This document shows, piece after piece, positions 5,391-64,000 of a DNA stretch of 64,000 nucleotides. The stretch is from Macrostomum lignano. Taxonomy: Eukaryota. The notes beneath the pieces were generated by a model that was not told where the DNA came from, did no database searches, and was given only the letters and a program-made list of their open reading frames with translations. Numbering within the stretch: position 1 is the stretch's first letter; the number at the start of each line of letters is the position of its first letter. Location: positions 62,001 through 126,000 of the forward strand of contig NIVC01001680.1 in NCBI GenBank assembly GCA_002269645.1, in the 5' to 3' direction. Made by a program: the position numbers and the translations under genes.

Positions 5391-5392
5391 CA

Positions 5393-28454: not shown

Positions 28455-29579
28455 ATGATAGCAAAGCAGTATTTAATACTTCTGGCCTGCGCTACAGTTC
28501 TTTTCATTGCGGTGGCGTCTCTATTGCGGTCCAGCAGTTTGACCACCTTAAAGACAGCTACAGAGTTGCTGCCAACACTGAGCGATGCCGAAGTGATCAA
28601 GAACTGTCCTCCGTACAACGAGCTCCGCAATGTCGACTTCACGAACCCCAGCTTGCGGCACCGGCTGTGTCAGGAGACGCTGGCCTACCAGTTAGTCAGG
28701 GGCAAGTTTCCCCTGTGCGAGCTGAACAGGAACTTACCGCAGCAGCTGTACACCATTGTCAGACAAGGGTCTCTTGTGGCCAATGTGACCCGAGCGATGG
28801 GCGGCCCTTTAATGCCGATATTCACCTTCGGCAAGGAGGACATGATTTCCGGGAAATTGTTAAAGAACGGCGCCTGGGAAATTGGCTCTATTCGGACGAT
28901 GATCAACCTGTTACAGAAGCTTTCGAAAAACTCTGCGACGTTCCTCGATATCGGCAGCAACCTTGGCATCTACAGCCTGCAGGCCAGAGAGCTCGGGTAT
29001 CCCGTGGTGGCCATCGATGCAAACATTCGCACACTGGTCAGGCTGCAGATGTCAGCGAAGCAGCTGAACTTGCTTGACGACAAGCTGAGGCTCTTCTGGG
29101 GCTTCATCAGTGACGACGTGGCGGTCAAGCGGATCAGCTGGGACGCTGACGGCATGAATTGCAATGTTGGAGGCGGCTCAGGCGGATTGGCTGACTGGAA
29201 ACGGCAGGTCAAGAAGTCAATCGAGGATACGATTCCCGTGACCACTGTCAAAGCGGACGAGCTTCGAGCGCACATCGGCACCAAGAATGTGGTCGTCAAG
29301 ATGGACATCGAGTCCGGTGAGCACCTGTTCATAAAGACTGGCGAGAAGCTGTTTAGAGAGCTCAACATCATGGCGCTGCAGATGGAGTTCTGGCGGAAAA
29401 AACTCAGTAACGGACCGCAATTGTCTAAGTATTACGAGTTTGTGACGCACTTCATGACCTCGAGGAACTTTTCTCTGCTGTCCATGAGCTTCCAAGTGCA
29501 GAACATCGCTACATTCAACGAGTGGGACGGACTGTGGGTCAGAAACGACTTTGTGGCTCAAGTTGCAAAGAAAGTTTGA
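28455..29579 (+). CDS. FkbM-family methyltransferase with N-terminal membrane anchor, copy 3 (374 aa, intronless)
   Basis: Intact ORF with FLDIGSNLG and VVKMDIESGE motifs and N-terminal YLILLACATVLFIAVASLL. Confidence 0.88.
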   Translation: MIAKQYLILLACATVLFIAVASLLRSSSLTTLKTATELLPTLSDAEVIKNCPPYNELRNVDFTNPSLRHRLCQETLAYQLVRGKFPLCELNRNLPQQLYTIVRQGSLVANVTRAMGGPLMPIFTFGKEDMISGKLLKNGAWEIGSIRTMINLLQKLSKNSATFLDIGSNLGIYSLQARELGYPVVAIDANIRTLVRLQMSAKQLNLLDDKLRLFWGFISDDVAVKRISWDADGMNCNVGGGSGGLADWKRQVKKSIEDTIPVTTVKADELRAHIGTKNVVVKMDIESGEHLFIKTGEKLFRELNIMALQMEFWRKKLSNGPQLSKYYEFVTHFMTSRNFSLLSMSFQVQNIATFNEWDGLWVRNDFVAQVAKKV

Positions 29580-30278
29580 ACATATTTTAAACGCGGGCGT
29601 TACGAGCTACCTAATTAGAAATTAACATGTCAAATAATTTCGATATTTTGTATTGTACGTTCCAATTTTATTCTTCTAATTTTTGTCGAATTGTCAAAAT
29701 GTCGATAATAGCTGGATGTGTCATGCAGTTGGGAGTGTAGTGGCTTATTATATTTCTTGCCTTGCGCAATTAAGGGAAACAATTGCAAAAGCCACCTACA
29801 GCTGGTACGTGGTTCCTAACCTCAGTAACAGCAAATGTCTGCACTCTTTTTACCAGACATTGCCAGATACATGTAGCTCTTAGGCGCTGATCGCTGCTGT
29901 CAACGGCAAGAGTGAACCTTCTTAGGGAATTTTTTCTCAAATTTAGCTAATTGTGCAAAGTCTCTAATGCGATTTTATAACAATGTCTAAAATATTTGTC
30001 TCGAGCGCCAGGGCTGGCGGAGTGATCATAATTAATTGCATAGCATTTCTCTCCTCGTTCACGCTGGTACAATGGTACTTTCACCACTAGTGCATGTTCT
30101 GACGATGTTGATGGAAAACTTGGTTTTTTGTGCCCTGCTGCCCGCATCGAATTCACAATACAACATTGTTACTTGTGTGGCTAATTTTAAATCTTAACTG
30201 TTCATAGTTTAATTTTTACATTTGATCAAAAATTATCATAAGTTCACTTGATTGGCTATATACGTGAGGTATTATATT

Positions 30279-34550: not shown

Positions 34551-37500
34551 ATGGCTGGACAGGGACAGGCTGGTAACTCTGGAATGGAGCAGCTTATTTT
34601 GATAATGAATAAGCTGCAAGATGCTTGTTCTTCATCTGGAACTGCCCAGAAATTTGATTTGCCACAGATAGCTGTTGTTGGAAGTCAAAGTGCTGGAAAA
34701 AGCAGTGTTTTAGAAAACTTTGTTGGAAAGTAAGTATATTATAATAAGTTAATTATGATTTTATGAGCTATGCCTATGGTAGGCCTAATTATTAATGATT
34801 TTTATAACTAAATCAAATCAAATAAAGGAATACTCATTTTAGAAGCAACTATTTTAAATAGTGATGGACCAAATATAGATTTTTGCTTGTTTCTGAAACT
34901 GAATCTAAATGTACAAAAAATTCCAAATCCAAATCTAAATATCCAAATGTGTTTCCAAATGTAAAAAAGTAAAAGGTAAACAGCGAGAGTAACTATTGAC
35001 ACCTTTTAGTGACTAAAATGCCTCATCATCTAATTAGTAATTGTATTAGTGCTGTATATTAATTTACTGACAAGATTCAATCTATCTTGGACTTACACTA
35101 CAGTATACTATATCTATCTAGTATCTGAATTGAAGTGAACTTAGAATTGAACTTAATTCTTATATATCTAATCTAACTACTTATTCCAATTACTAATCTA
35201 AATATACTAAATCTATATACTAAAAATGAACCTCGTTAGTTGACCAACTTTTCGTAAATTTATACTGTTAATGATTTTTCACAAATATTAACTGATATTA
35301 TGTTTCTGCAATTTGATAACTTTACCATGTACAGTGTACATAAAGTCTAATGCATTTGAATTTTGAAAAAACAAAATAATGATTTAACAATTAAACAATG
35401 ATTACCTAAAAATGTTTCTGCGACTTTAGGTTGAATGCCTCAAAGGTCCTAAAGTTAAGTAACCTTAAATAAACATTATTGTAAAAACAGACAATGATAA
35501 AAACAAACCATATGACATAAAATTTTGTGTTTTTGTTTTTTTTAATTTACTGTACTTTTTTCAAGTTGTATTTCTTTTACATTTGCATAATTTTGTTTTT
35601 GTTTTTTGATTTTTTCATATTTGAAAGCACATTCAGAAATTCAGAAGAAAAAAATTTATGAATCCAAAACATTTGGATTTCTAAAAGAGTTAGACTTTTT
35701 TTTAGATTTGGATTCCAAATCCAAATATTCAGATTTCATCACTAATTTTAATTGCCTAGACTCTGGAAGGTTACATGTATGCTAGAAAATTCTGGCATAT
35801 AAATGACCCTTTTCAAAGTTAGCATACAAATTTTAGCATTCAAATTTATGCAATTTTTTGGCGTACAAATTTTGGCATATAAATTTTTGCCATTTTTGCA
35901 TACAAAATTGGTTTGGTTTTGTGTAAGATGTTTTTTCCTAACTTTAGTGAAATTTGGGCACTTAGTCACAATCTACCATATAATCTACACATGTCTTGTG
36001 TAAATTATTTTGCTGTTAGTATAATACTAATGGTCAAATTTGTAAAATTGGTCTGCATCTAGTCTTTCTTGTCTAAGATGTTTTTTCCTAACTTTAGTAA
36101 AATTTAGGCACTTAGTCACAACCTACCATATAATCTACACATGTCTTGTGTAAATTATTTTGCTGTTAGTATAATACTAATGGTCAAATTTGTAAAATTG
36201 GTCTGCATCTAGTCTTTCTTGTCTAAGATGTTTTTTCCTAACTTTAGTAAAATTTAGGCACTTAGTCACAATCTACCATATAATCTACACATGTCTTGTG
36301 TAAATTATTTTGCTGTTAGTATAATACTAATGGTCAAATTTGTAAAATTGGTCTGCATCTAGTCTTTCTTGTCTAAGATGTTTTTTCCTAACTTTAGTAA
36401 AATTTAGGCACTTAGTCACAATCTACCATATAATCTACACATGTCTTGTGTAAATTATTTTGCTGTTAGTATAATACTAATGGTCAAATTTGTAAAATTG
36501 GTCTGCATCTAGTCTTTCTTGTCTAAGATGTTTTTTCCTAACTTTAGTAAAATTTAGGCACTTAGTCACAATCTACCATATAATCTACACATGTCTTGTG
36601 TAAATTATTTTGCTGTTAGTATAATACTAATGGTCAAATTTGTAAAATTGGTCTGCATCTAGTCTTTCTTGTCTAAGATGTTTTTTCCTAACTTTAGTAA
36701 AATTTAGGCACTTAGTCACAACCTACCATATAATCTACACATGTCTTATATAAATTATTTTGGTATGCATTTACAATTTAGTTTTGTCATAGTTTTTATA
36801 AGACATTTATTTCTATAGATGCTGGGGTAGTAAAGATGTAGTTTTGGTCTGCATATTCTTTTGGGTCTATAATAATTGCCCATAGACAAATTTCCTACCA
36901 AGATTTGCCTGCAAAAGATGTCTACTGAGATTTGCCCACAGTGCATTTTGCCCTATTAGGCATACCCTACCATGCTCATAAAAGAGCCAGGCAACCTAGT
37001 TTATGGGATCAAAAGCCTAGTTTATGTCCATGAACTTAGGAGTTTTCCATTGCTCTGAGTTTCAAATAGAAACTTTCATTTTGCTTTAATATTATTGTGA
37101 AATTATGCCAATTGTATCAAATAATAATATATTCAAACCAAAATATTGGTAGAGCCAAATGCTTGAAGTAGATAAGTAACAAATAAGAGGCAATAGGCAA
37201 TAGAATAGTCCATTTGTTCAATAATGTAGATTCTTTTTAGCTATCCTATGTACTAAAATTTATCTAAAAAAACAATCAATACAAATTTTAGAGACTTTCT
37301 GCCTCGTGGTTCTGGCATTGTCACCAGGCGCCCGCTGATACTCCAGTTGTTGTACAATCCATCAGGTAGGAAGGCTTATTTGACACAATAATAATTTAAT
37401 AGTTAGTTACTGGTACTGTTCCGTGAACTCTTACTGTTAGCAATCTAAGAGTTGCCCACATATTCCATCCCTCCCCCTGACCCAATGCCCTCTTCAAGAC

Positions 37501-40500
37501 CTTCCCTTACCCCATCGCCATCTCAAAGACCCGCCCCTGACCCCACTGCCATCTTCAAGACCTTCCCTGACCCCACCACCATCTTCAAGACCTTCCCTGA
37601 CCCCACCACCATCTTCAAGACCTTCCCTGACCCCACCACCATCTTCAAGACCTTCCCTGACCCCACCACCATCTTCAAGACCTTCCCTGACCCCACCACC
37701 ATCTTCAAGACCTTCCCTGACCCCATCACTATCTTCAAGACCTTCCCTGACCCCACCACCATCTTCAAGACCTTCCCTGACCCCACCTCCATCTTCAAGA
37801 CCTTCCCTGACCCCACCACCATCTTCAAGACCTTCCCTGACCCCACCACCATCTTCAAGACCTTCCCTGACCCCACCACCATCTTCAAGACCTTCCCTGA
37901 CCCCACCACCATCTTCAAGACCTTCCCTGACCCCACCACCATCTTCAAGACCTTCCCTGACCCCACCACCATCTTCAAGACCTTCCCTGACCCCACCACC
38001 ATCTTCAAGACCTTCCCTGACCCCACCACCATCTTCAAGACCTTCCCTGACCCCACCACCATCTTCAAGACCTTCCCTGACCCCACCACCATCTTCAAGA
38101 CCTTCCCTGACCCCACCACCATCTTCAAGACCTTCCCTGACCCCACCACCATCTTCAAGACCTTCCCTGACCCCACCACCATCTTCAAGACCTTCCCTGA
38201 CCCCACCACCATCTTCAAGACCTTCCCTGACCCCACCACCATCTTCAAGACCTTCCCTGACCCCACCACCATCTTCAAGACCTTCCCTGACCCCACCACC
38301 ATCTTCAAGACCTTCTCTGACCCCACCACCATCTTCAAGACCTTCTCTGACCCCACCACCATCTTCAAGACCTTCACTGACGCCGCTGCTATGTCCAACA
38401 CCCGCCCTGACCCCACTGCCATCTCCAACACCCGCCCTGACCCCACTGCATTGGCAGCCGAGTACGCCGAGTTCGGGCACCAGCGCGGCCGGAAGTACAC
38501 CAACTTCGAGGAGGTCCGCCAGGAGATCGAGGCGGAGACGGACCGGCTCACGGGCCGCAACAAGGGCATCTCCAATGTGCCAATCATGCTGCGCGTGTTC
38601 AGTCCGCACGTGCTCAATTTGACCTTAGTTGACCTGCCCGGCATGACCAAAGTGGCCGTTGGCGACCAGCCGCCCGATATCGAGGTGCAAATCCGCAACA
38701 TGCTTCTGGAGTTCATCACCAAGGAGAACTGCCTGATTCTGGCAGTCAGTCCGGCCAACTCGGACTTGGCCAACTCCGATGCGCTCAAACTTGCCAAGGA
38801 GGTTGCCTTGTTTAAGCCAATTGTTTTTGTTGTCAAATATCGGGGCCATATTAATTTTGCAGGTGCAAAGTTATTAATCTGCTACTGCTCGCTCCCGCCA
38901 GGTGGACCCCGCTGGCACCCGCACCATTGGCGTAATCACCAAGCTGGATCTCATGGACCAGGGCACCGACGCTAGGGAGGTTCTGGAGAACAAGCTGCTG
39001 CCGCTTCGCCGCGGCTACATCGGCGTGGTCAACCGGTCCCAGAAGGACATCGAAGGTGAGACTGCTCACTGCTCAGACTCTACTCCACTGACTGCTCAGA
39101 CTCTACTCCACTGACTGCTCAGACTCTACTCCACTGACTGCTCAGACTCTACTCCACTGACTGCTCAGACTCTACTCCACTGACTGCTCAGACTCTACTC
39201 CACTGACTGCTCAGACTCTACTCCACTGACTGCTCAGACTCTACTCCACTGACTGCTGAGACTCTACTCCACTGACTGCTCAGACTCTACTCCACTGACT
39301 GCTCAAACTCTACTCCACTGACTGCTGAGACTCTACTCCACTGACTGCTCAAACTCTACTCCACTGAGTGCTCAGACTCTACTCCTCTGACTGCTCAGAC
39401 TCTACTCCACTGACTGCTCAGACTCTACTCCACTGACTGCTCAGACTCTACTCCACTGACTGCTCAGACTCTACTTCACCCTATAATGCCCATAGGCCTC
39501 ATCTACACAGCTCCTTGCTCCCCTCTGAAACGTCACCCCAGGCCGCAAAGACATCAAGGCAGCCATGGCGGCGGAGCGGAAGTTCTTCCTGTCGCACCCG
39601 TCCTACAGGCACATGGCGGAGCGCATGGGCACCCCGTACCTGCAGCGCTGCCTTAACCAGCAGCTCACCAACCACATCCGGGAGACGCTGCCCTCCCTGC
39701 GCAGCGAGCTGCAGACCAAACTGCTAGCCCTGGAGAAGGACTACCAGGCCTACGCTAATTTTAGTCCCGACGATCCCAGCATCAAGACCAAGGCGATGAT
39801 GACGTAAGCCGCTGTTTGCCAGCTGTCTGGGGTTTTTCCATTGGGCTGCCCGCGTTCATCTTTCATCCATTCCTATGGGAAGTTGTTGGGGTTTTCCATC
39901 GAGCTGATGCACTCATTCCAATAGGAAGTGTGGGGATTTCCATCGAGCTGATGCACTCATTCCAATAGGAAGTGTGGGGATTTCCATCGAGCTGATGCAC
40001 TCATTCCAATAGGAAGTGTGGGGATTTCCATCAAGCTGATGCACTCATTCCAACGGGGGTTAAATGTGGGGGGTTTTCCATCAAGCTGATGCACTCATTC
40101 TAACGGGGGTTAATTGTGGGGGGTTTTCCATCAAGCTGATGCACTCATTCCAACGGGGGTTAAATGTGGGGGGTTTTCCATCGGGCTGATGCACTCATTC
40201 CAATCGGGGACTGCTTAGGCGATCGCATGAAGCAAGCCAGAGTGGCCATCTTGCAGGATGATCAACCAGTTCACTGACGAGTTCACCCAGTCCATCGAAG
40301 GCTCCGGCGAAGTCAGCACCAAGGAGCTGTCCGGCGGAGCCAGAATCAATCGCATCTTTCACGAGAGATTCATGTACATGCTGCATCAGGTAAGATAATT
40401 AGCAGTGCGTGCATACTGAGCTGTCACCTTGTCAAGTGCTTTATACACTTTTATAACTTGAGCCCATCTTAGCTGTTCAATGTTTAATTTACCAGTGCTG

Positions 40501-43500
40501 GAGTACAAAGATTTAATCGCTACATGTCGGATTCTTCCTAAAATGTGTTTAGTAAACTGACCAATTAAATATTTTTATAGCCAGAATAATATAAGAACAA
40601 TGGATTCGAGATTTGAGCAGAAGGCACTGAGCCAGAGTAGAAGCAGAGGGCACTGAGCCAGAATTTAAGCAGAGGGCGCTGAGCCAGAATAGAAGCAGAG
40701 GGCACTGAGCCAGAATAGAAACAGAGGGCGCTGAGCCAGAATAGAAGCAGAGGGCACTGAGCCAGAATAGAAACAGAGGGCGCTGAGCCAGAATAGAAGC
40801 AGAGGGCACTGAGCCAGAATAGAAACAGAGGGCACTGAACCAGAATAGAAGCAGAGGGCGCTGAGCCAGAATAGAAGCAGAGGGCACTGAGTCAGAATAG
40901 AAGCAGAGGGCACTGAGCCAGAATAGAAGCAGAGGGCACTGAGTCAGAATAGAAGCAGAAGGCACTGAGCCAGAATAGAAGCAGAGGGCACTGAGCCAGA
41001 GTAGAAGCAGAGGGCACTGAGTCAGAATAGAAGCAGAGGGCACTGAGCCAGAATAGAAGCAGAGGGCACTGAGCCAGAATAGAAACAGAGGGCACTGAAC
41101 CAGAATAGAAGCAGAGGGCGCTGAGCCAGAATAGAAGCAGAGGGCACTGAGCCAGAATAGAAACAGAGGGCACTGAGCCAGAATAGAAGCAGAGGGCACT
41201 GAGCTTGAATAGAAGCAGAGGGCACTGAGCCAGAATAGAAGCAGAGGGCACTGAGCCAGAATAGAAGCAGAGGGCACTGAGCCAGAATAGAAGCAGAGGG
41301 CACTGAGCCAGAATAGAAGCAGAGGGCACTGAGCCAGAATAGAAGCAGAGGGCACTGAGCCAGAATAGAAGCAGAGGGCACTGAGCCAGAATAGAAGCAG
41401 AGGGCACTGAGCCAGAATAGAAGCAGAGGGCACTGAGCCAGAATAGAAGCAGAGGCACTGAGCCAGAATAGAAGCAGAGGGCGCTGAAAACTTAACCGCT
41501 GCGGGAAAAGCTCACAAATAAGCAATTTAAACCGCATAGCATGCCACTAACTCATTCTATTGTCACTTTTAAGCGTTTCGAAGCTCATTTCTAGGCATCC
41601 CTGTTTGTAGGACTTCATTCTAAGCAGAGAGTGCGTATTTATACAGTGCACTGATCCAAAAGATCCAAAAGAACTCTGCTTTTAATGCTTTGCATTGCCA
41701 CCCATTCCAATGTAGCGTGTAAACAAATATTTCTAATGCAGAAACTAACAGATTGTGTTTCAATTGTTATTGAATTTTAATCATTAGCCGTATCTAACTG
41801 CCCGTTGTTCACTGCAATTAACGGTGCGGCACTATTGGATAAAAACTAGTTGTAGCAGTGCTGTTAGATTGCTAATCCCCTGCTCTTTTCCTAGCTTTGT
41901 TCTGACACCATCTCAGCCACATAGGGTGATGTACAGCATTGAGACATTGTCTGGGTAGACAGACAGTTGTGCATACACTGAGACACAATTGGGCAGACAC
42001 TGAGACAGACAGGCAGACACTGAGACACAATTGGGCAGACACTGAGACAGACAGGCAGACACTGAGACACAATTGGGCAGACACTGAGACAGACAGGCAG
42101 ACACTGAGACACAATTGGGCAGACACTGAGACAGACAATTGGGCAGACACTGAGACAAACAATTGGGCAGACACTGAGACAGACAATTGGGCAGACACTG
42201 AGACAAACAATTGGGCAGACACTGAGACAGACAATTGGGCAGACACTGAGACAAACAATTGGGCAGACACTGAGACAAACAATTGGGCAGACACTGAGAC
42301 AGACAGGCAGACACTGAGACAGACAATTGGGCAGACACTGAGACAGACAATTGGGCAGACACTGAGACAGACAATTGGGCAGACACTGAGACAAACAATT
42401 GGGCAGACACTGAGACAAACAATTGGGCAGACACTGAGACAGACAGGCAGACACTGAGACAGACAATTGGGCAGACACTGAGACAGACAATTGGGCAGAC
42501 ACTGAGACAAACAATTGGGCAGACACTGAGACAAACAATTAAGCAGACACTGAGACAGACAATTGGGCAGACACTGAGACAAACAATTAAGCAGACACTG
42601 AGACAAACAATTGGGCAGACACTGAGACAAACAATTAAGCAGACACTGAGACAAACAATTGGGCAGACACTGAGACAAACAATTGGGCAGACACTGAGAC
42701 AAACAATTGGGCAGACACTGAGACAGACAGGCAGACACTGAGACAGACAGGCAGACACTGAGACAGACAATTGGGCAGACACTGAGACAAACAATTGGGC
42801 AGACACTGAGACAGACAATTGGGCAGACACTGAGACAGACAGGCAGACACTGAGACAGACAATTGGGCAGACACTGAGACAGACAGTTGGGCAGACACTA
42901 AGACAGACAATTGGGCAGACACTGAGACAAACAATTAGGCAGACACTGAGACAAACAATTAGGCAGACACTGAGACAAACAATTAGGCAGACACTGAGAC
43001 AAACACAAAAACACAAAAGGACAAACACAAAGATGCACTTGTAGACACTTAAGCAGACACCAACACAAAACGACAGATAGACGAACAAATAGAGACAAAG
43101 ACAGGCAGAAATAGTTCTCTATCAGAGGCTGTGTTCTCACGCCATTAACGCACGCACAAATCGATTTTTGAAATTTTGAGTAAAAGTGCATTTCCAGCCG
43201 CACAGTCAAAATGGCCTCAACTTCGCTCCACTGCAGACCGAATCCGATGAGCGCGAGCTGCGCAAGGAGATCAGCTACACTATTCGCAATGTGCACGGCA
43301 TCAGGTAGGAGCTCTGCTCTTTTCATCTGGTAACCGGTGTTTAGTGCCGGAGTCCTCTAAATCTATAATGGGATCCTTTTACTTTTTCCTTAATGCTTTC
43401 CGCACTAAAATCTAAAATGCATTCAAAACATTTTATCTTCCCGTGACTAACATCCCATTTCCCATGTTGAGAATCCCATTTCCCATGTTGAGAATCCCAT

Positions 43501-46500
43501 TTCCTATGTTGAGAATCCCATTTCCCATGTTGAGAGTCCCATTTTCCATGTTGAGAATATCATTTCCCATGTTGAGAATCCCATTTCCCATGTTGATAAT
43601 CCCATTTCCCATGTTGATAATCCCATTTCCCATGTTGATAATCCCATTTCCCATGTTGAGAATCCCATTTCCCATGTTGAGAATCCCATTTCCCATGTTG
43701 AGAGTCCCATTTCCCATGTTAAGAATCCCATTTCTCATGTTGATAATCCCATTTCCCATGTTGATAATCCCATTTCCCATGTTGATAATCCTATTTCCCA
43801 TGTTGATAATCCTATTTCCCATTTTGAGAATCCCATTTCCCATGTTGAGAGTCCCATTTCCCATGTTGAGAGTCCCATTTCCCATGTTGATAATCCCATT
43901 TCCCATGTTGATAATCCCATTTCCCATGTTGAGAATCCCATTTCCCATGTTGAGAGTCCCATTTCCCATGTTGAGAATATCATTTCCCATGTTGAGAGTC
44001 CCATTTCCCATGTTGAGAGTCCCATTTCCCATGTTGAGAGTCCCATTTCCCATGTTGAGAGTCCCATTTCCCATGTTGAGAATCCCATTTCCCATGTTGA
44101 GAATCTCATTTCCCATGTTGAGAATCTCATTTCCCATGTTGAGAATCCCATTTCCCATGTTGAGAGTCCCATTTCCCATGTTGAGAATATCATTTCCCAT
44201 GTTGAGAATCCCATTTCCCATGTTGAGAGTCCCATTTCCCATGTTGAGAGTCCCATTTCCCATGTTGAGAATCCCATTTCCCATGTTGAGAATCCCATTT
44301 CCCATGTTGAGAATCTCATTTCCCATGTTGAGAATCTCATTTCCCATGTTGAGAATCCCATTTCCCATGTTGAGAGTCCCATTTCCCATGTTGAGAATAT
44401 CATTTCCCATGTTGAGAGTCCCATTTCCCATGTTGAGAGTCCCATTTCCCATGTTGAGAGTCCCATTTCCCATGTTGAGAGTCCCATTTCCCATGTTGAG
44501 AGTCCCATTTCCCATGTTGAGAATCCCATTTCCCATGTTGAGAGTCGCATTTCCCATGTTGAGAGTCCCATTTCCCATGTTGAGAATCCCATTTCCCATG
44601 TTGAGAATCTCATTTCCCATGTTGAGAGTCCCATTTCCCATGTTGAGAATATCATTTCCCATGTTGAGAGTCCCATTTCCCATGTTGAGAATCCCATTTC
44701 CCATGTTGAGAATCTCATTTCCCATGTTGAGAATCCCATTTCCCATGTTGAGAGTCCCATTTCCCATGTTGAGAGTCCCATTTCCCATGTTGAGAATCCC
44801 ATTTCCCATGTTGATAATCCCATTTCCCATGTTGAGAATCCCATTTCCCATGTTGATAATCCCATTTCCCATGTTGAGAATCCCATTTCCCATGCAGAAA
44901 ATCCCACACTGGGTGCACCCGATCCCCGCAGGACCGGCCTGTTCACTCCCGACATGGCATTCGAGCGCATCGTCAAGCAGCAGATCATGCGGCTGAAAGA
45001 GCCGACGCTGAAATGCGTGGACATGGTGATCGAGGAGCTCATCAACGTGGTGCACAAGTGCACGCAGCAGATGGCCAGCTACCCCAGGCTGCGCGAGGCC
45101 GTGGAGACCACCGTCACCAACCGGATCCGGGAGCAGGAGACCCGGGCCAAGACCCAGCTGATGCTGCTGGTGGACATCCAGCTGGCCTACATGAACACCA
45201 ATCACGAGGACTTTATCGGCTTCGCCAAGTGAGTCTCGGGTTGCGTGGCCCGGATGCGAACACAATTCCCATTGCCGAATCAGTCATTGCGATTCTCACT
45301 TTTACCTTCAGCGCCCAGCAACGGACTGAGAGCACCAGGAAGGAGCGAGTGGCGAATCAGGTGCGGCAGCTTATGCTGGGGTTGGGATAATAAAGATGGG
45401 GGATTCGAGATGTGCTAGAGATGCGATGTGTGGGATATGCTAGAGGTGAGGTATGGGATATGCTAGAGATAGGGGTATGGGATTTGGGATATGCCAGAGG
45501 TGGGATATGGGATATGCTAGAGATAGGGGTATGGGTATGGGATTTAGGATATGCCAGAAGTGGGATATGGGAAATAGGATCCATGAGATATTAGAGATGA
45601 GATCTCTGGAATTCTAGAGATAGGATCTCTGGGATGCTAGAGATGGATCATGGGACACTGTAATAGTTTATACTAGACTGGATCAGAAAATTAGGTGAGA
45701 CAAAATGGTTTGGTTTGCTGCTGTCACAATTATCATTATTATTCCTCTCTGTAAAACCGTCAAAGTGTCTGAATCTCAGCTGAGCAAATACCACTGAGAA
45801 TAAATATTCTGATTTATGGAATTTGTCTGCGCCCTGTGTACTTCAGCTGTGAGTACAGCCGTTTTTACTGAGGCCCAGCAAAATGTGAATCAATGAGAGG
45901 ACTCAATCTGAGCTCATTATATATTTTTTGTTTTCGCGAGGCCTATATGCAGAAATCAGGCAGAGTTGTTCGCTTTTGCGCAGTGCATTTTACCGGCTCA
46001 CAGTCATTCAAGTCGCCTCTCCTCTGTCCAGGTGATTCGCAAGGGCTATCTCACGCTCAACAATGTCTCCCTTATGCGCGGCGGCTCTAAGGAGTGCTGG
46101 TTTGTGCTCACCGCTGAGTCGCTCATGTGGTTCAAGGACGAGGAGGTGAGCTGACCGGCTGACTAGCTGACCCACTGATTCCTCAATAACCCACTGATTC
46201 CTTCCCTGACCCACTGATTCCTCAATAACCCACTGATTCCTTCCCTGACCCACTGATTCTTCAATGACCCACTGGCTCCTTCCCTGACCCACTGATTCTT
46301 CAATGACCCACTGGCTCCTTCCCTGACCCACTGATTCCTCAATAACCCACTGATTCCTTCCCTGACCCACTGATTCTTCAATGACCCACTGGCTCCTTCC
46401 CTGACCCACTGATTCTTCAATGACCCACTGGCTCCCCTTCCCTGACCCACTGATTCTTCAATGACCCACTGACTCCTTCCCTGACCCACTGATTCTTCAA

Positions 46501-49500
46501 TGACCCACTGACTCCTTCCCTGACCCACTGATTCTTCAATGACTCACTGATTCTTCAATGGCCCACTGACTCCTTCTGAACCACTGACTCTTCAATGACC
46601 CACTGACTCTTCAATGACCCACTGACTCCTTCCCTGACCCACTGACTCCTTCCCTGACCCACTGATTCTTCAATGACCCACTGACTCCTTCCCTGACCCA
46701 CTGATTCTTCAATGACCCACTGACTCCTTCCCTGACCCACTGATTCTTCAATGACCCACTGACTCCTTCCCTGACCCACTGATTCTTCAATGACCCACTG
46801 GCTCCTTCCCTGACCCACTGATTCTTCAATGACCCACTGACTCCTTCCCTGAACCACTGATTCTTCAATGGCCCACTGACTCCTTCTGAACCACTGACTC
46901 TTCAATGACCCACTGACTCCTTCCCTGACCCACTGACTCCTTCCCTGACCCACTGACTCCTTCCCTGACCCACTGACTCCTTCCCTGACCCACTGACTCC
47001 TTCCCTGACCCACTGACTCCTTCCCTGACCCACTGATTCTTCAATGACCCACTGGCTCCTTCCCTGACCCACTGATTCTTCAATGACCCACTGACTCCTT
47101 CCCTGAACCACTGATTCTTCAATGGCCCACTGACTCCTTCTGAACCACTGACTCTTCAATGACCCACTGACTCCTTCCCTGACCCACTGACTCCTTCCCT
47201 GACCCACTGATTCTTCAATGACCCACTGACTCCTTCCCTGACCCACTGATTCTTCAATGACCCACTGACTCCTTCCCTGATCCACTGACCAACCATTTTT
47301 TCCGCAGGAGCGTGAGAAAAAGTACATGCTGCCCCTTGACGGCCTGAAGATTCGAGACGGCGAGTCGCGCGGCCTGTTCGGCAAGAAGAACGTCTTCATG
47401 CTGTTCCACTCTGAAGGCCGGTGGGTGTTATGCAAGTTTTAGTACAAAGGCGTTCTGTATGCAGTTTACAACTCAGCCGCTTATACCTAAGCTGTGATAT
47501 GATAAGCATCAGCCCTCCCATCTCCATCCCCCAGCAACACGTACAAAGACTACAAGACGCTGGAGCTGGCCGCCGAGTCCGCAGACGAAGTGGACAGCTG
47601 GAAGGCGTCGTTTCTGCGTGCCGGCGTTTATCCCGAGCGGGAGAGCCGCGAAACGGATGAGGTAAAGCTGCGTCTGGCATGAGTGGCTAGCTGGGTATAT
47701 TTTGTCAATAATTGCTACTGTCAAGTAGTGCAAAGCGAGTCTTTGTTAAACAGTGTTAGTGTCGCGTGGGGTCTGTCTGGTTGCAAACATGCAGTTGGCT
47801 GAGTTCGACGAGCCAATTGGTCACGTGATCGTGCGGTCATACGGTCACCAAATTATCAAGTAGATGTAGGGCCCTATTGTACTTTTATTACTCGAATTCG
47901 GTCGTTGGTGTACTTTTATTGCTCATTAGTCTCTGTCAGATAGTCGCACATCTCTTTGTTGCTCTACTAGTACCTAAAGCAGCTATGATTGGCTATTGCT
48001 CTCACTCACTGGTTACACTGAGAATGCTCAGCTATAATTGGCTATTGCTCTCACTCACTGGTTACACTGAGAATGCTCAGCTATGATTGGCTATTGCTCT
48101 CACTCACTGGTTGCACTGAGAATGCTCAGCTATAATTGGCTATTGCTCTCACTCACTGGTTGCACTGAGAATGCTCAGATATGATTGGCTATTGCTCTCA
48201 CTCACTGGTTGCACTGAGAATGCTCAGCTATAATTGGCTATTGCTCTCACTCACTGGTTGCACTGAGAATGCTCAGCTATAATTGGCTATTGCTCTCACT
48301 CACTGGTTGCACTGAGAATGCTCAGATATGATTGGCTATTGCTCTCACTCACTGGTTGCACTGAGAATACTCAGCTATGATTGGCTATTGCTCTCACTCA
48401 CTGGTTGCACTGAGAATGCTCAGCTATGATTGGCTATTGCTCTCACTCACTGGTTGCACTGAGAATGCTCAGCTATGATTGGCTATTGCTCTCACTCGCT
48501 GGTTGCACTGAGAATGCTCAGCTATAATTGGCTATTGCTCTCACTCGCTGGCTACACTGAGAATGCTCCACCGCCTCAGCAGCTCGGCGAAGATCCCACA
48601 GACTCGGACGGTCCGGGCCAGCAGCCCGACAGCTTGCGCGACCGGCAAGTTGAAATCATTCGCAGCCTGGTCAGCAGCTATTTCCATATCTGCGTCTCCG
48701 AGCACAAAGACCTGTTCCCCAAGATCGTGGTGCACCTGCTGGTCAACTGCGTAGGGCTTGATGGGTCTTTGTGACCGCCTGTCTGGCTTCGCGGCTTGGG
48801 GGGGGGGGTATTCGCTGATGATTTCACTCTGATTCCAGCTGCGATCACGCCTATGCTCCCAGATTGACTCACGCATTGCCTGATTGGCCCGCCACCCCAG
48901 CCCGAGCAGGACCTCGGCAGCACGGATCCGCAGATGGAGCGCCAGGTGGAGACCATCCGCAACCTGGTCGAGTCCTACATGAAAATTGTGGACAAAACCC
49001 AGCGGGATATTGTGCCCAAGACTGTCATTCACATTGTGGTCAATGAGGTAATGCCCTCGGAGCCATGACTGCCGTTCCCCTTCCTAATTGTGATTCCATC
49101 AATACTATGCATTGGCTTTAACCACTCTAATGAACTGCAATTCACCAATGGATAGGGTTCTCAGCGCTTGTAGCCTTGAAAATTAGTGAACATGATTGAT
49201 TAATGTTCAGCCCACCTGGCAGTGCCAATTGCATTCGTTTCATACCTGTCATTAGCCTAATCAGAAACCGAAGTTTCCGAAGTTTAGAGAATACCCAATC
49301 TTAGCCTTATCTTGAAAAACTATGCCCAGCCTCAACTTGTACACCCAATCCCAGCCTCCAGTGTACACCCAATCCCAGCCTCCACTGTACACCCAATCCC
49401 AGCCTCCAGTGTACACCCAATCCCAGCCTCCACTGTACACCCAATCCCAGCTTCCAGTGTACATCCAATCCCAGCTTCCAGTGTACACCCAATCCCAGCT

Positions 49501-52500
49501 TCCAGTGTACACCCAATCCCAGCCTCCACTGTACACCCAATCCCAGCTTCCAGTCTACACCCAATCCCAGCTTCCAGTGTACATCCAATCTTAGCCTCCA
49601 CTTGTACACCCAATCCCAGACTCCACTGTACACCCAATCCCAGCCTCCACTGTACACCCAATCTCAGCTTCCAGTGTACACCCAATCCCAGCTTCCAGTG
49701 TACATCCAATCTTAGCCTCCACTTGTACACCCAATCCCAGACTCCACTGTACACCCAATCCCAGCCTCCACTGTACACCCAATCTCAGCTTCCAGTGTAC
49801 ACCCAATCCCAGCTTCCAGTGTACACCCAATCCCAGCTTCCAGTGTACACCCAATCCCAGCTTCCAGTGTACACCCAATCCCAGCTTTCAGTGTACACAC
49901 AATCCCAGCTTCCAGTGTACACCCAATCCCAGCTTCCAGTGTACACCCAATCCCAGCTTCCAGTGTACACCCAATCCCAGCTTCCAGTGTACACCCAATC
50001 CCAGCTTCCAGTGTACACCCAATCCCAGCTTCCAGTGTACACCCAATCCCAGCTTCCAGTGTACACCCAATCCCAGCTTCCAGTGTACACCCAATCCCAG
50101 CCTGCACTGTAGGCCAAATCCCACCTACCCGCCCCGCAGCTGAAGGACTTCCTGAAGTCCAGCATGCTGGCGCAGCTGTACGGCGGCTACGATCAGAACC
50201 AACTGATGGAGGAGTCGCCCGAGGAGGCGCAGCGCCGCGAGGAGACGCTGCGCATCTACAAGGCCACCAAGGAGGCGCTGAAGATCCTCAGTGACGTCTC
50301 GGCCAACACCACGCACACGCCGACTCCGCCGCCTGTGAAGGATGACTGGATCCAGCCGGACTCGATGCCCGCCCCGCAGCCTCCGACTCACGGCCGGCGA
50401 ACCCCTGTTGGCGGCGGCCCGCCGTCTCAGCCGCCTCCTGTAGCCGGCCGGCCCGCCGTGCCCTCGCGACCTGCGCCCTCTGTACCGCGCCCTGGAGGCG
50501 CCGGGGCTCCCGGCGGTCAGCTGCCTCCGCCAATGGTGCCACAGTAAGTGCCCAGGCCTCTGGTGTCTTGGGGGTTTGCGATTTCCTGCATCCCCTATAT
50601 TGATTGAATAGGCGATCCATGTGTTGCTTTTCTGTAGCTCGATTTGTTGCGCTTCGATTTTAGCTATTCGATTGGGCGCCAAACTGTGTTTAAAAATTCA
50701 ATGTAATTTCACTCTACAGTATTAGGACTCAGAAGCGCATATAATAAAGCGTTAAGGCACGCCAAACAGGGTGTCTGAGTAGCGCCAAACAGGGTGTCTA
50801 AGTTGTGCCAGACAGGGTGTCTAAGTTGCGCGAAACTGGGTGTTTAAATGGCGCCAGACAGGGTGTCTAAGTAGCGCCAGACAGGGTGTCTAAGTTGCGC
50901 CAAACTGGGTGTTTAAATGGCGCCAGACAGGGTGTCTAAGTAGCGCCAGACAGGGTGTCTAAGTTGCGCGAAACTGGGTGTTTAAATGGCGCCAGACAGG
51001 GTGTCTAAGTAGCGCCAAACAGGGTGTCTAATTAGCGCCAAACAGGGTGTCTGAGTAGCGCCAAACAGGGTGTCTAAGTAGCGCCAGACAGGGTGTCTAA
51101 GTTGCGCGAAACTGGGTGTTTAAATGGCGCCAGACAGGGTGTCTAAGTAGCGCCAAACAGGGTGTCTAATTAGCGCCAAACAGGGTGTCTAAATTGCGCC
51201 AAACAGGGTGTCTAAGTTGTGCCAAACAGGGTGTCTGAGTAGCGCCAAACAGGGTGTCTGAGTAGTGCCAAACAGGGTGTCTAAGTTGCGCCAAACAGGG
51301 TGTCTAATTAGCGCCAAACAGGGTGTCTAAGTAGCGCCAGACAGGGTGTCTAAGTTGCGCCAGACAGGGTGTCTAAGTTGCGCCAAACTGGGTGTTTTTA
51401 AACCGCTAAACAGGGTGTGTTAACTAGCGCCAAACAGGGTGTCTAATTAGCGCCAGACAGGGTGTTTAAATGGCGCCAAATATGGGAGTCCAAAAAGCGC
51501 CATATCGGATGTCTAAATAGCGTCAAACAGGGTGCCTAAATGGCGTCAAATAGGGCTGTTTAAATAGCGCCAAATAGGGGTGTTTAAACAGCACCAAAAG
51601 GGTGGTAAATGGCACCAAAAGGGTGGTAAATGGCACCAAAAGGGTGGTAAATGGCACCAAAAGGGTGGTAAATGGCACCAAAAGGGTGATAAATGGCACC
51701 AAAAGGGTGGTAAATGGCACCAAAAGGGTGGTAAATGGCACCAAAAGGGTGGTAAATGGCACCAAAAGGGTGGTAAATGGCACCCAAAGGGTGATAAATG
51801 GCACCAAAAGGGTGATAAATGGCACCAAAAGGGTGGTAAATGGCACCAAAAGGGTGATAAATGGCACCAAAAGGGTGGTAAATGGCACCAAAAGGGTGAT
51901 AAATGGCACCAAAAGGGTGGTAAATGGCGCCAAAAGGGTGATAAATGGCACCAAAAGGGTGGTAAATGGCACCAAAAGGGTGATAAATGGCACCAAAAGG
52001 GTGGTAAATGGCACCAAAAGGGTGATAAATGGCACCAAAAGGATGATAAATGGCACCAAAAGGGTGGTAAATGGCGCCAAACATTGGAGTCCAAAAAGCG
52101 CCAAATAGGGGTGTTTAAACAGCACCAAAAGGGTGGTAAATGGCACCAAAAGAGTGGTAAATGGCACCAAAAGGGTGATAAATGGCACCAAAAGGGTGGT
52201 AAATGGCGCCAAAAGGGTGATAAATGGCACCAAAAGGGTGGTAAATGGCGCCAAAAGGGTGGTAAATGGCACCAAAAGGGTGATAAATGGCACCAAAAGG
52301 GTGATAAATGGCACCAAAAGGGTGGTAAATGGCGCCAAACATGGGAGTCCAAAAAGCGCCAAATAAAACGCCCAGAAGCGCGCCGAAAGAAGAATCAATA
52401 AAGTATGCATAAAAAACCGAAATAGGCGGTCTCCACTTGCATGGACTCGCTTGCATTCTTTACCTACCAACCCCATCAGACATCGGTCAAAATCGCCAGC

Positions 52501-55089
52501 TCCTGAGTAAGTTGAACTGTTCTGTGGTCGCTTCCCGTTCTGTCTGTCCCGTCTGCTGTGTCCGTGCTTTGAGTGCTGCTTTGAAAACCGTTGCACTCGC
52601 TTCGTCTACTGTCAGTAGCATCACAGTTCGGGATTTTATTGTTTAGAGCCAATAAAATTTTACTTGCCAATCGTACTGGCCTCAAAGGCGCACTCGCTCG
52701 CACTGAACTCTTTGAACACGCGCTTGTGTAGGAAGCCGCTGGGCCAGCGGTCTGTTTCCACTGGCGCTTTTGGCTTTGAAGCCGCAGCCGCCGCTTCGGT
52801 GGCCGCGTCCTACCAGGCTGCCCAGCCGTTTTCAAAGCAGTAAGACTGCCGTATTGGACCGCCTGCACCACCGCAATCCCTGCTGGATTGGATCTGGACT
52901 CGGATAAATCATCTGTCTGTGTCATCTGTGCTTTATCGGTCTTGGATTTTTATATTTATAAAACTTTCAAGTTAAGATGATTATGATAAAATTCTTTACC
53001 AGACAAATACGAATATTATTGCAGAGTTTAGATTGGCATTTTTTGTGTTCCTAAATTGGCTCTGCGCGGCAATACAATTGCCAACGAATCTTTCATCCGG
53101 ACTGTCAAACTCCCCTTTCATCCCGGGAGCTCGCCAATTCGTCTCTCGGGCAGGACAAACTTTTTGGGGTCGGGATCTCGGGACAGCTCGGGACGGGATC
53201 TCGGGACAGCTCGGGGCAACTCGGGATCTCAGGACAGCTCAGGATCTCAGGACAACTCGAGATCTCAGGACAACTCGGGATCTCAGGACAGCTCGGGACA
53301 ACTCGGGATCTCAGGACAGCTCGGGACAACTCATGATCTTGGGACAGCTCCGGACGGGATCTCGGTACTTGATTTGGCCATAGTCACAATCCAGCATCCA
53401 TAATTACAGACTATTACTCCATTAGTCTACAAACAGCCTACAGACACTGTGAACCACAGGCTCAGAAGAGATATCTTATCTGCACAGCTGTTTAGCAATT
53501 TTTATTATTGCTTGAGAACAATCTTCGGCTTTCGATTCTTCAAAGATTTGTTTCTTTTTCGCCATCTCGGGCAATAATTTGGAAGCTTGCATACTACCTA
53601 AATAGTCACATTATCAAAATCTTCTCGCTCAACCATTCAAGATTTCCATGTCAGAATTCTGGATTGGGGATGGAATCCCATTCTAGCACTGCCCCGAATC
53701 CCTCTGAAGTCGCATCTGGCACTCAGCTAAGCCTTTTGCTCTCTATTTAACCGACTGATCTATGCGCTGAAACTGCTTCAACTGGATACACGCTACCTAC
53801 TACTGCCTGCTTTTCTTCAGCAGTAGTACAATACGCTTATTAGACGTATTTTTGCTATTTGTTCAATTTCCGTCACCGATTGTAGGCGAGCTGTGAATGA
53901 CAGCCACGGCCTGCCGCCGCCCCTGCTGCCTGCGTGAGTAGCGAGCCGCTGGGCCCCTCGCTTCCCTCATCGGCTTTTAATCCTCGCTCATTTTTATTTG
54001 CCTGGGTGGAATTCTGTTGCTTGATCGCATGCTCCTTTTTGCTTTACAAGCAGTCAGATTTAATTGCCAATATTTCCTTAAGTATTATTTTTATTTTAAA
54101 GTATACTTTTCACTGCATACAAACATAAAATTTTGTCTGTCTTGCATGCTCGTGTGAAAATATTTTGGCAAATATACTCACCCACTCATTACGGCTGTTG
54201 TGCCACCCTCCCAGATCCTCAGTTGCTGGGCCAGCCTCCCACATCCTCAGTTGCTGTACCAGCCTCCCACATCCTCAGTTGCTGAGGCCAGCCTCCCAGA
54301 TCCTCAGTTGCTGAGGCCAGCCTCCCAGATCCTCAGTTGCTGAGGCCAGCCTCCCAGATCCTCAGTTGCTGGGCCAGCCTCCCAGATCCTCAGTTGCTGG
54401 GCCAGCCTCCCAGATCCTCAGTTGCTGGGCCAGCCTCCCACATCATCAGTTGCTGTACCAGCCTCCCAGATCCTCAGTTGCTGTACCAGCCTCCCAGATC
54501 CTCAGTTGCTGAGGCCAGCCTCCCAGATCCTCAGTTGCTGAGGCCAGCCTCCCAGATCCTCAGTTGCTGAGGCCAGCCTCCCAGATCCCCAGTTGCTGAG
54601 GCCAGCCTCCCAGATCCTCAGTTGCTGGGCCAGCCTCCCAGATCCTCAGTTGCTGTACCAGCCTCCCAGATCCCCAGTTGCTTAGGCCAGCCTCCCAGAT
54701 CCTCAGTTGCTTAGGCCAGCCTCCCAGATCCTCAGTTGCTGGGCCAGCCTCCCAGATCCTCAGTTGCTGAGGCCAGCCTCCCAGATCCTCAGTTGCTAGG
54801 CCAGCCTCCCAGATCCCCAGTTGCTGGGCCACCGCCGCCCTCCCCTGCCCAGGGTGCCAGACCCAGCACCAGGATCAGTATTGCATGTTCGTGTTGTTGC
54901 AAAGCCAAAAAGCGGCACATTTCTCATACTAGAATTTGAGCTATCGTATACAAGGATTCGACTCTGCTTGTCTAGAAAGCTCGCATAGAAACTATCAGCT
55001 GTTCGGCAGCCGACCACCCCCCCGCACCGTCCCGCAGGCGGCCAACATCCGGCACTCCGCCCATTCCGTCCAGGCCGAACATGGGCTAA
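34551..55089 (+). CDS. DNM1/shi: Classical dynamin (GTPase-middle-PH-GED-PRD), complete multi-exon gene
   Basis: Frame-consistent GT-AG exons: 34551-34729, 37292-37365, 38458-38801, 38902-39055, 39542-39803, 40257-40389, 43237-43304, 44932-45228, 45312-45360, 46032-46145, 47308-47420, 47535-47661, [48583-48750 or] 48901-49047, 50140-50543, [52480-52506], [52732-52839], 53886-53933, and a last exon ~54999-55089. Motifs: G1 [42 protein letters not shown] (VIRKGYL…WFVLT), [13 protein letters not shown], and PRD ending [10 protein letters not shown]. Confidence 0.96.
35922..36762. repeat. 150-bp tandem repeat (~5.6 units) in dynamin intron 1
   Basis: agtctttcttgtctaagatg recurs at 36061, 36211, 36361, 36511 and 36661. 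Confidence 0.95.
37520..38450. repeat. 30-bp intronic minisatellite (ccttccctgaccccaccaccatcttcaaga)
   Basis: About 30 units ending at the exon-3 acceptor. Confidence 0.95.
39062..39478. repeat. 23-bp intronic minisatellite (actgctcagactctactccactg)
   Basis: Begins immediately after the donor gtgag. Confidence 0.95.
39880..40205. repeat. ~44-bp intronic minisatellite
   Basis: tttccatcgagctgatgcactcattccaataggaagtgtgggga units. Confidence 0.9.
40615..41487. repeat. 26-bp intronic minisatellite (gagccagaatagaagcagagggcact)
   Basis: Direct reading. Confidence 0.95.
41940..43005. repeat. 24/20-bp composite intronic minisatellite (gggcagacactgagacagacaatt)
   Basis: Direct reading. Confidence 0.95.
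43445..44895. repeat. 21-bp intronic minisatellite (cccatttcccatgttgagaat)
   Basis: About 69 units filling most of the intron. Confidence 0.95.
46160..47290. repeat. Composite intronic minisatellite (gacccactgattcttcaat / gacccactgactccttccct)
   Basis: Fills the PH-domain intron from donor to acceptor. Confidence 0.95.
47980..48570. repeat. 49-bp intronic minisatellite
   Basis: gctatgattggctattgctctcactcactggttgcactgagaatgctca, about 12 units, ending at the acceptor of the duplicated GED exon. Confidence 0.95.
48583..48750 (+). CDS. Candidate alternative (duplicated, divergent) dynamin GED exon
   Basis: cagcag| acceptor (NAGNAG) and |gtaggg donor, 168 nt, phase 0/0. Encodes …[37 protein letters not shown], paralogous to exon 48901-49047. 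Confidence 0.7.
49330..50105. repeat. 24-bp intronic minisatellite (gtgtacacccaatcccagcttcca)
   Basis: Direct reading. Confidence 0.95.
50755..52345. repeat. Two adjacent ~21-bp intronic minisatellites (gcgccaaacagggtgtctaag; aaagggtggtaaatggcacca)
   Basis: Direct reading. The spacer ggagtccaaaaagcgcc recurs at ~51485, ~52087 and ~52344. Confidence 0.93.
52480..52506 (+). CDS. Candidate 27-nt dynamin PRD microexon (HRSKSPAP)
   Basis: ccccatcag| acceptor, consensus |gtaagt donor, phase 2/2, frame-neutral. Confidence 0.6.
   Translation, partial: TSVKIASS
52732..52839 (+). CDS. Candidate 108-nt dynamin PRD cassette exon ([35 protein letters not shown])
   Basis: ttgtgtag| acceptor, |gtaaga donor, phase 2/2, open frame. 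Confidence 0.55.
53170..53365. repeat. ~18-bp intronic minisatellite (tcgggatctcaggacagc)
   Basis: Direct reading. Confidence 0.85.
54205..54825. repeat. ~29-bp intronic minisatellite (gaggccagcctcccagatcctcagttgct)
   Basis: Direct reading. Confidence 0.93.
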
Positions 55090-57532: not shown

Positions 57533-62990
<5,458 letters not shown>

Positions 62991-63351
62991 TAGCACAGGG
63001 AACAACCAGACTTCTCTGTCGCAATAAGTTTCAGGCCTTTCAGCTTCATGTGCAACATCTGAGGCTCTGAAGTTGATGTGTTGACAGTTTAGTGCAAAAA
63101 TTAAAACTTCCACTCTCATAGATATTTTATTAGTTAAACAAGTGCTGCATCCTGAGACTGCGGTAACTTGTGTGACTTCTAGTTGGCCCTTCGCCCTTGT
63201 TTTAGTGCCTTGTTTAGAAGCATTTGATCCCTCAGTATCGCTGACTTCCGATAGTAATTGTTGAATCGCGAATTTCATTTACCCGCGCTTCTGCTTTCGT
63301 GTTAATTAAACAAGTAATTTTTTCAGTGGGACTGTTCATCTTGGCAACGAA

Positions 63352-64000
63352 TCCACATAGCAACTGTATAGCTTTCTTAGAAACCGGCAGCCAATGGGCA
63401 GAAGTCCACATAGCAACTGTATAGCTTTCTTAGAAACCGGCAGCCAATGGGCAGAAGTCCACATAGCAACTGTATAGATTTCTTAGAAACCGGCAGCCAA
63501 TGAGCAGAAGTCCACATAGCAACTGTATAGATTTCTTAGAAACCGGCAGCCAATGGGCAGAAGTCCACATAGCAACTGTATAGCTTTCTTAGAAACCGGC
63601 AGCCAATGAGCAGAAGTCCACATAGAAACTGTATAGCTTTCTTAGAAACCGGCAGCCAATGAGCAGAAGTCCACATAGAAACTGTATAGCTTTCTTAGAA
63701 ACCGGCAGCCAATGAGCAGAAGTCCACATAGAAACTGTATAGCTTTCTTAGAAACCGGCAGCCAATGAGCAGAAGTCCACATAGAAACTGTATAGCTTTC
63801 TTAGAAACCGGCAGCCAATGAGCAGAAGTCCACATAGCAACTGTATAGATTTCTTAGAAACCGGCAGCCAATGGGCAGAAGTCCACATAGCAACTGTATA
63901 GCTTTCTTAGAAACCGGCAGCCAATGAGCAGAAGTCCACATAGAAACTGTATAGCTTTCTTAGAAACCGGCAGCCAATGAGCAGAAGTCCACATAGAAAC
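63352..64000. repeat. 53-bp intronic minisatellite, runs off the window end
   Basis: agaagtccacatagcaactgtatagctttcttagaaaccggcagccaatgggc, about 12 units. Confidence 0.95.

Follow-up and report, generated by a model that had tools for sequence, protein, structure and literature searches.

Why does a dynamin gene carry two neighbouring, strongly diverged versions of the same stalk exon, and how are they used? This question is raised by a classical dynamin gene of the free-living flatworm Macrostomum lignano (GenBank assembly GCA_002269645.1, Mlig_3_7). The window analysed here is a stretch of 64,000 nucleotides of contig NIVC01001680.1 (positions 62,001 to 126,000 of the forward strand), and all positions given below refer to it unless stated otherwise. 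Dynamin polymerises via its stalk. The two exons, an upstream diverged copy (exon A) and a downstream canonical copy (exon B), lie in the GED part of this stalk, and a first-pass annotation of the DNA had listed them as a candidate for mutually exclusive splicing. Judged from its sequence, exon A is a genuine duplicate of the dynamin stalk exon that arose long ago and has been maintained by selection. We give an even chance to the reading that it serves as a minor or condition-specific alternative exon, which would replace B and alter the surface of the stalk.

The dynamin gene was rebuilt exon by exon, and every intron of the resulting model has GT-AG borders. The spliced product was compared with full-length human dynamin-1 (4uud); the alignment comprised residues 8–821 and scored 1177 bits. 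PAA65118.1, the protein annotated for this gene, contains the Pfam domains PF00350, PF01031, PF00169, and PF02212. The GTPase, middle/stalk, PH, GED, and proline-rich domains follow each other in that order, which identifies the protein as a classical dynamin. PAA65118.1 is 100% identical to the rebuilt model in its N-terminal 520 amino acids, and the rest matches the window via exon B, exon e13, and the terminal exon. The annotated coding sequence consists of e1–e11, exon B, e13, and the terminal exon; exon A is skipped. The annotation was RNA-seq-guided and was generated with StringTie, TACO, and TBONE (PMC5730564). Exon A was found at the expected offset within the PAA65118.1 locus, which is the record of the window itself.

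The borders that had been proposed for the two exons are exact; both are of phase 0/0 and flanked by GT-AG. They are adjacent and homologous, have the same phase, compatible lengths, open frames, and intact splice sites, and thus possess what is required of a tandem-duplicated exon pair at the level of sequence. The acceptor AG of exon A (48581–82) is part of a tandem acceptor cagcag (48577–48582), and use of the in-frame upstream AG (start at 48580) would add one Gln. An ungapped alignment of the A and B cores yielded 18 identities in 38 residues. All of them lie within the 35 residues from RQVE to VN, and the same count had been given in the first-pass annotation. When the whole protein was compared with the window by means of tblastn, the A/B pair was the sole secondary match (E = 8e-7 and 6e-7); it is therefore the only duplicated exon in the gene. 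Each exon alone exceeds the gathering cut-off of the Pfam GED profile PF02212 (21.4 bits), with 30.1 bits for A and 38.2 bits for B. Both match the profile at the same positions (2/3 to 38/39; A: 3–38), and the claim that they encode the same GED/stalk helix is thereby confirmed. Exon A joined to e13 reaches 80.8 bits and matches positions 3–92. The exon end corresponds to residue 692 in human dynamin-1 numbering, and the duplicated region comprises approximately residues 645–692. These data support the assignment of exons A and B to the PH-GED linker and the larger part (the first two thirds) of the stalk helix alpha-S4. On this evidence, exon A is an old tandem duplicate; the gene that contains it is one of the classical dynamin genes of M. 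lignano, of which there are at least four.

The DNA identity of A and B is 53.5%. At third codon positions, the identity of 0.316 is at the level of chance (0.330 expected from base composition), and the silent sites of the pair are therefore saturated. At codon positions 1 and 2, 23 and 26 of the 38 codons are identical. For reference, 56 classical dynamins of arthropods, flatworms, molluscs, and vertebrates were aligned; of the 38 core positions, 14 do not vary among them. Exon B is close to the canonical sequence. Despite 20 differences from B among the 38 residues, exon A has kept 13 of the 14 invariant positions, and the remaining one is an exchange of E for D; for a random placement of the 20 changes, P = 1.8e-5. 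Moreover, the codons differ at 11 of the 18 residues common to A and B; for example, the invariant Ser is encoded by AGC in A and by TCC in B. The identity has therefore been held at the protein level and not via gene conversion. The GC content of exon A is 0.64, 0.34, and 0.80 at codon positions 1, 2, and 3, respectively (45/56 at third positions, termed GC3, and 19/56 at second positions; P ≤ 6e-4 compared with the highest intron GC of 0.59). The GC3 values of the exons from e3 on are 0.76–0.94, and the GC values of the introns are 0.42–0.59. Hydrophobic residues are retained at 15 of 16 positions, compared with 11.5 expected in neutral walks (P = 0.03). The 56 codons contain no stop and no indel; as exon A is open in two of the three frames, the open frame alone is weak evidence. 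The GC-rich codons, the conserved hydrophobic register, and the open frame with intact splice sites, all of which had been put forward in the first-pass annotation, were thus borne out. The selection on the upstream copy that it had deduced from them is best described as past purifying selection at the protein level, as indicated by the invariant positions, the saturated silent sites, and the differing codons. For the greater part of its history, exon A must therefore have been translated and must have served as a functional GED helix.

The first-pass annotation had also considered exon A more similar to the GED of Drp1/Vps1-type proteins than to that of classical dynamins. This assignment did not hold. 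The score of exon A is 26.6 bits with dynamin-1 and at most 19.2 bits with Drp1, and the corresponding values for exon B are 60.6 and 23.5 bits; A scores best against classical dynamin, and B is closer to Drp1 than A is. Against two Drp1/Vps1-like database proteins, A scores above B by merely 5–6 raw score units. The Drp1 resemblance of exon A is limited to single residues (SYF, LVN).

A second genomic copy of the locus is found on contig NIVC01003740.1 and is approximately 96% identical. Such close second copies are expected, as the M. lignano genome was recently duplicated (PMC5730564). In the second copy, exon A (27047–27214 of the examined locus L003) is open and has identical splice sites. 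The two copies of exon A differ by 1 substitution in 168 nt (CAT to CAG, which exchanges H for Q), and exon B shows no difference. In the flanking introns, the copies differ at 15/921 and 27/746 positions (1.6–3.6%), and in all other exons combined at 27/2462 (1.1%). The A-B intron (27215–27363 of L003) differs at 1 of 149 positions. This exon-like conservation may reflect a splicing-regulatory constraint or chance. The comparison, which is of low power, fits a behaviour of exon A as an exon. At 25263–25390 of the NIVC01003740.1 locus, an extra T in the T-run of e11 shifts the frame, and PAA50015.1 therefore stops early; the cause is an assembly error in the homopolymer or else incipient pseudogenisation of this copy.

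Most invertebrates have been described with one classical dynamin gene. In M. lignano, we found at least four diverged gene groups (P0184, P0300, which contains the gene of the window, P0303, and P0320). Two full-length paralogues show 73–84% identity to the window protein, and for a third one (BOX15_Mlig002684g1, locus L002) the synonymous divergence dS is about 1.6. In this old paralogue, e11 is followed by a 668-nt CT-rich intron, in which nothing of A is found, and then by one B-type exon. The groups P0303 and P0320 contain one B-type exon each and no A, and only a B-type exon is present at the locus of the trematode Paragonimus kellicotti. Silent differences amount to a proportion (pS) of 0.67 between A and B and of 0.66 between the paralogues. 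As both comparisons are saturated, A could predate or postdate the split of the paralogues. An exhaustive search of representative sequences gave no A-like sequence among the best 150 matches, which is weak evidence because clustering at 50% identity hides isoforms. For the exon-A region, a word-indexed protein search returned only canonical B-type fragments; this search was unreliable and missed the window's own proteins. No match was obtained in public assemblies when the unspliced open reading frames around exons A and B were looked up exactly. The same holds for an exact look-up of spliced isoform models, which ended with the C-terminus at 52732–52843 and not with the annotated one.

One flatworm model might be taken for a parallel case. 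KAF6779292.1 from P. kellicotti (LOND01000373.1; locus stretch 7230–18800) contains the GED exon three times and the preceding exon twice, with identical peptides. As in M. lignano, it is the same exon with the same borders (ending in ...VNE) that occurs as a tandem repeat in a flatworm dynamin model. Unlike A and B, the copies are identical, the e11-like exon is duplicated as well, and the stretch contains 5001 N. We therefore rejected this case as an assembly artefact.

What do public gene models say about the splicing of exon A? The UniProt entries A0A1I8HWQ7 and A0A1I8GRH8, which are automated models and represent one genomic copy each, contain exon A with exactly the borders claimed for it. 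The public models are in conflict (GenBank shows B alone, UniProt A together with B), and at least one set consequently misdescribes the main product. Candidates for mutually exclusive splicing as predicted with WebScipio (Hatje et al. 2017, PMC5740500) are neighbouring, similar exons in the same frame that differ in length by at most 20 amino acids, contain no stop, and have GT-AG borders. The pair A/B shares all of these properties and is classified by them as predicted mutually exclusive exons. Exon A is a sound candidate for alternative use. In the human atlas compiled in that study, mutually exclusive use was validated for 654 (38%) of the 1,722 intronic exons that had been newly predicted, and its authors point out that many neighbouring exons are similar to each other without being spliced exclusively (PMC5740500).

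A cis-acting mechanism that enforces the exclusion is not recognisable at the locus, be it steric hindrance, incompatibility of U2 and U12 splice sites, a frame shift with nonsense-mediated decay, or an RNA structure. All donors in the gene are of the U2 GT type. The three introns around A and B contain no inverted repeats of at least 12 nt, and no Rfam matches were found in the window. The pair thus differs from the enforced pairs listed for human, as steric block, U2/U12, and frame incompatibility are all inapplicable. Such a mechanism is a supportive and not an obligatory criterion. Among the confirmed human clusters, 9% are explained by steric hindrance, under 1% by U2/U12 incompatibility, and 60% by incompatible frames, and a substantial share lies outside all three (PMC5740500); the missing cis mechanism is therefore not decisive. 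A scan for RNA duplexes gave one weak candidate, formed by 48549–48568 (the last minisatellite unit upstream of the A acceptor) and 49155–49176 (downstream of B). It consists of two 7-nt blocks (GGCTACA/CTGAGAA and TTCTCAG/TGTAGCC), with E = -32.8 compared to -21.9 ± 3.1 for shuffled sequences. This duplex, which is weak and known from a single species, could mask the A acceptor or loop out both exons.

Several observations weigh against a replacement of B by A. The sole RNA-seq-guided model of the gene, PAA65118.1, contains B without A, and a second model, A0A1I8FS23, also contains B only. The two UniProt models with exon A join A to B, which is the opposite of mutual exclusion. The lengths of both exons are multiples of three, such that the frame is preserved when both are included or both are skipped, and nonsense-mediated decay cannot police the choice. 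With 150 nt, the A-B intron exceeds three functional introns of this gene (83, 100, and 112 nt); this length and the branch-point-like motifs near the B acceptor make a steric block unlikely. Apart from the weak match described above, the duplex scan did not find docking/selector complementarity. The BLOSUM score of exon A does not differ significantly from that of neutral walks (P = 0.13), near-invariant residues have been lost (N to S, D/E to S, K to S, and R to K), and 14 of the 38 residues were never found at their position in the 56 dynamins. The constraint on A has therefore been relaxed, and it has been looser than that on B. Finally, the comparison of the genomic copies has low power, and the single change in A is non-synonymous.

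Some of these observations can be accounted for by a retired exon, i.e. a GED exon that was functional for a long time and is now unspliced or spliced as noise only; its signature of selection would be historical, with too little time elapsed for decay. The RNA-seq-guided model with B alone is in line with this view, as are the lack of A in the trematode locus and in three further dynamin paralogues of M. lignano, the loss of several near-invariant residues, an A donor without G at position -1, and the non-synonymous nature of the sole A difference between the genomic copies. However, the frame, the phase, both splice sites, and a GC3 of 0.80 are intact at two loci, and 56 codons have acquired neither stop nor indel. 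Furthermore, GenBank lists one model per gene, and a missing A is compatible with a minor isoform. We regard retirement as a serious but doubtful possibility. It is distinctly unlikely that A and B are both constitutive or co-included, in which case the protein would have one more GED-like helix, situated between PH domain and stalk. A is indeed joined to B in two independent automated models (one per genomic copy), and the frame is kept in the joined product. The A-B intron is splice-competent when judged by other introns of the gene, and it is unusually conserved between the copies. Yet the RNA-seq-guided model skips A. Exon A keeps exactly the residues needed for the alpha-S4 position, which takes only one helix, and, apart from one assembly artefact, no dynamin with two such helices occurs among the several hundred matches listed.

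Reading through the donor of A would add VGLDGSL and lead to a stop at 48772–48774, such that exon A would encode an alternative end. Only 7 codons separate the donor from this TGA, and a comparable read-through of e11 exists as a model (P0304, ending in ...TDEVKLRLA). The truncated product would lack the C-terminal GED/BSE helix and the proline-rich domain, and with them elements needed for assembly-stimulated GTPase activity. The position of the donor is exactly conserved relative to B, which favours splicing, and an alternative end is highly improbable. That the pair is an assembly error or a coincidental similarity might be suspected in view of the P. kellicotti scaffold, which shows the same exon three times, identical and beside gaps. 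A and B, in contrast, are highly diverged in DNA, their similarity is significant, and the arrangement recurs in the second contig and in models from an independent assembly. An artefact or chance is refuted in practice by the similarity scores and the second genomic copy.

The reading that we prefer, at even chance, is thus the replacement of B by A in a minor or condition-specific isoform. As the four-helix stalk offers one alpha-S4 position and A has been kept fit for it, we infer that A takes the place of B. The A isoform would be identical to the B isoform apart from the linker and a re-surfaced alpha-S4. In this helix, the segment MKIVDKTQR of B would be replaced by FHICVSEHK of A, and the final residue would change from E to C; the buried and invariant positions would be retained. 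Helix alpha-S4 belongs to the four-helix stalk and to the dimer interface-2 (PMC7584598, PMC9653092). Interface-1 is located near residue 692 in the numbering of a dynamin-2 model (PMC7584598). With alpha-S4 in interface-2 and its end presumably beside interface-1, the swap would tune self-assembly, co-assembly with B-type dynamins, or autoinhibition by the PH domain. Given that no cis enforcement of exclusivity is visible, the choice between the exons would rest on trans-acting splicing regulators.

The closest known case is the exon pair 10a/10b of DNM1 and DNM2. It encodes stalk residues 399–444, is conserved between lamprey and human, is regulated during development, and influences self-assembly; a single missense change in this region causes epilepsy in mice through disturbed assembly (PMC2916854). 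According to the same authors, invertebrates have a single form in the 10a/10b region (PMC2916854). A model based on RNA structure has been proposed for 10a/10b (Suyama 2013, as cited in PMC5740500). Like A/B, the vertebrate exons are tandem, homologous, of the same phase and of similar length, encode a segment of a classical dynamin stalk that is involved in self-assembly, and comprise one canonical and one more derived copy. The two pairs differ in position, as 10a/10b lies in the middle-domain stalk and A/B in alpha-S4 of the GED stalk. They also differ in divergence: 14 of 46 residues are different in 10a/10b, and 20 of 38 in A/B. The vertebrate pair is conserved in all vertebrates and has been shown to be regulated, whereas A/B is a candidate pair, seen so far in a single flatworm species and there in only one out of four or more paralogues. 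Alternative splicing that tunes assembly is also found elsewhere in the dynamin superfamily: for Drp1 (DNM1L), alternative exons are reported to tune assembly and targeting (PMC3691453). The Drp1 exons act as cassettes that add inserts to the GTPase domain and the variable domain, whereas A/B is a duplicated stalk-helix exon. In agreement with the first-pass annotation, which knew of no pair in the GED, our literature searches gave only the middle-domain pair 10a/10b, which is described as specific to vertebrates, and no description of a duplicated GED exon was found.

The features of the window are listed in the following table.

Positions of the dynamin gene, its parts, and other features in the window (slashes mark exon-intron borders)
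Feature	Position	Strand	Remarks
Repeat with long open frames	5348-6350, 23392-24408, 28406-29606	both	MPRLLPISRNVAEFF...; three copies
Reverse-transcriptase-like fragment	20449-21156	+	upstream of the dynamin gene
Classical dynamin gene of M. lignano	34551-55089	+	GenBank PAA65118.1, BOX15_Mlig009929g1
Other intron minisatellites	37400-38440, 41930-43040, 43416-44906, 46167-47289, 50760-52363	.	
Exon e11	47535-47661	+	end of PH domain and start of PH-GED linker; phase-0 donor GAG/gtaaag
Minisatellite upstream of exon A	47980-48568	.	49 nt x 12 copies; most of the intron, stops 14 nt short of the A acceptor
Open reading frame opposite A and B	48541-49032	-	163 codons; across exon A, the A-B intron, and exon B
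Exon A, upstream diverged copy	48583-48750	+	168 nt, 56 codons, phase 0/0; donor TGC/gtaggg
A-B intron	48751-48900	+	150 nt; G11 run; CTGAT/CTCAC branch-point-like motifs 16-35 nt from the B acceptor
Exon B, canonical copy	48901-49047	+	147 nt, 49 codons, phase 0/0; acceptor ccccag/, donor GAG/gtaatg
Minisatellite downstream of exon B	49338-50123	.	24 nt x 33 copies; in the intron
Exon e13	50140-50543	+	remaining alpha-S4, C-terminal GED/BSE helix, start of proline-rich domain
Candidate alternative C-terminal exon	52732-52843	+	good acceptor, right phase; KPLGQRSV...PFSKQ, then stop
Annotated terminal coding exon	55038-55089	+	ends in stop
Mitochondrial-type (DnaK-like) Hsp70 gene	about 57533-64000	+	annotated in the same record; Pfam HSP70; exon-like stretches 61593-62048 and 62679-62990

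The candidate C-terminal exon resembles the C-terminal exon of the paralogue P0184; the annotated model uses the terminal exon further downstream instead. The UniProt model P0302 has one further proline-rich exon. Most of the longer dynamin introns consist largely of a minisatellite of their own, with periods of 20–69 nt and 12–72 copies. The copy number differs strongly between the two genomic copies of the gene, and the intron between e11 and A comprises 921 nt in the window and 1656 nt in NIVC01003740.1. These minisatellite-filled introns fit the content of 15% simple and tandem repeats reported for the M. lignano genome. The composition of the gene changes sharply between 34551–37365 and the part from 38458 onward: GC3 is 0.29 in e1 and 0.56 in e2, intron 1 has a GC content of 0.28, and every later exon falls into the range given above. 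The open reading frame on the minus strand opposite A and B most likely results from the high GC3 of the coding strand and does not represent a gene. The reverse-transcriptase-like fragment and the repeat with three copies are presumably transposable elements, and the Hsp70 gene lies downstream of the dynamin gene.

Exon A itself is already contained in public protein models, and what the literature searches did not yield is a description of the duplicated GED exon. For structural biology, it would provide a natural variant of alpha-S4, a re-surfaced helix in which 13 of 14 invariant residues are kept. M. lignano is a transgenic, regeneration-competent model. The idea of an alternative stalk helix is therefore directly testable in this animal. 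A farther-reaching version, which we consider unlikely, is that A/B is an independent flatworm counterpart of 10a/10b on the GED side, in which a regulated swap of alpha-S4 would give the A isoform interfaces that mismatch those of B-type dynamin and would thus lead to separately assembling dynamin pools within one cell or tissue. If this were true, A/B would be the first pair of mutually exclusive exons in a GED, and would amount to a natural experiment in which a helix is swapped at interfaces 1 and 2. To our knowledge, 10a/10b is the only well-studied natural variation of the dynamin stalk. Should A/B be a second, independently evolved pair of stalk exons, exon duplication would be a recurrent route to diversify dynamin assembly.

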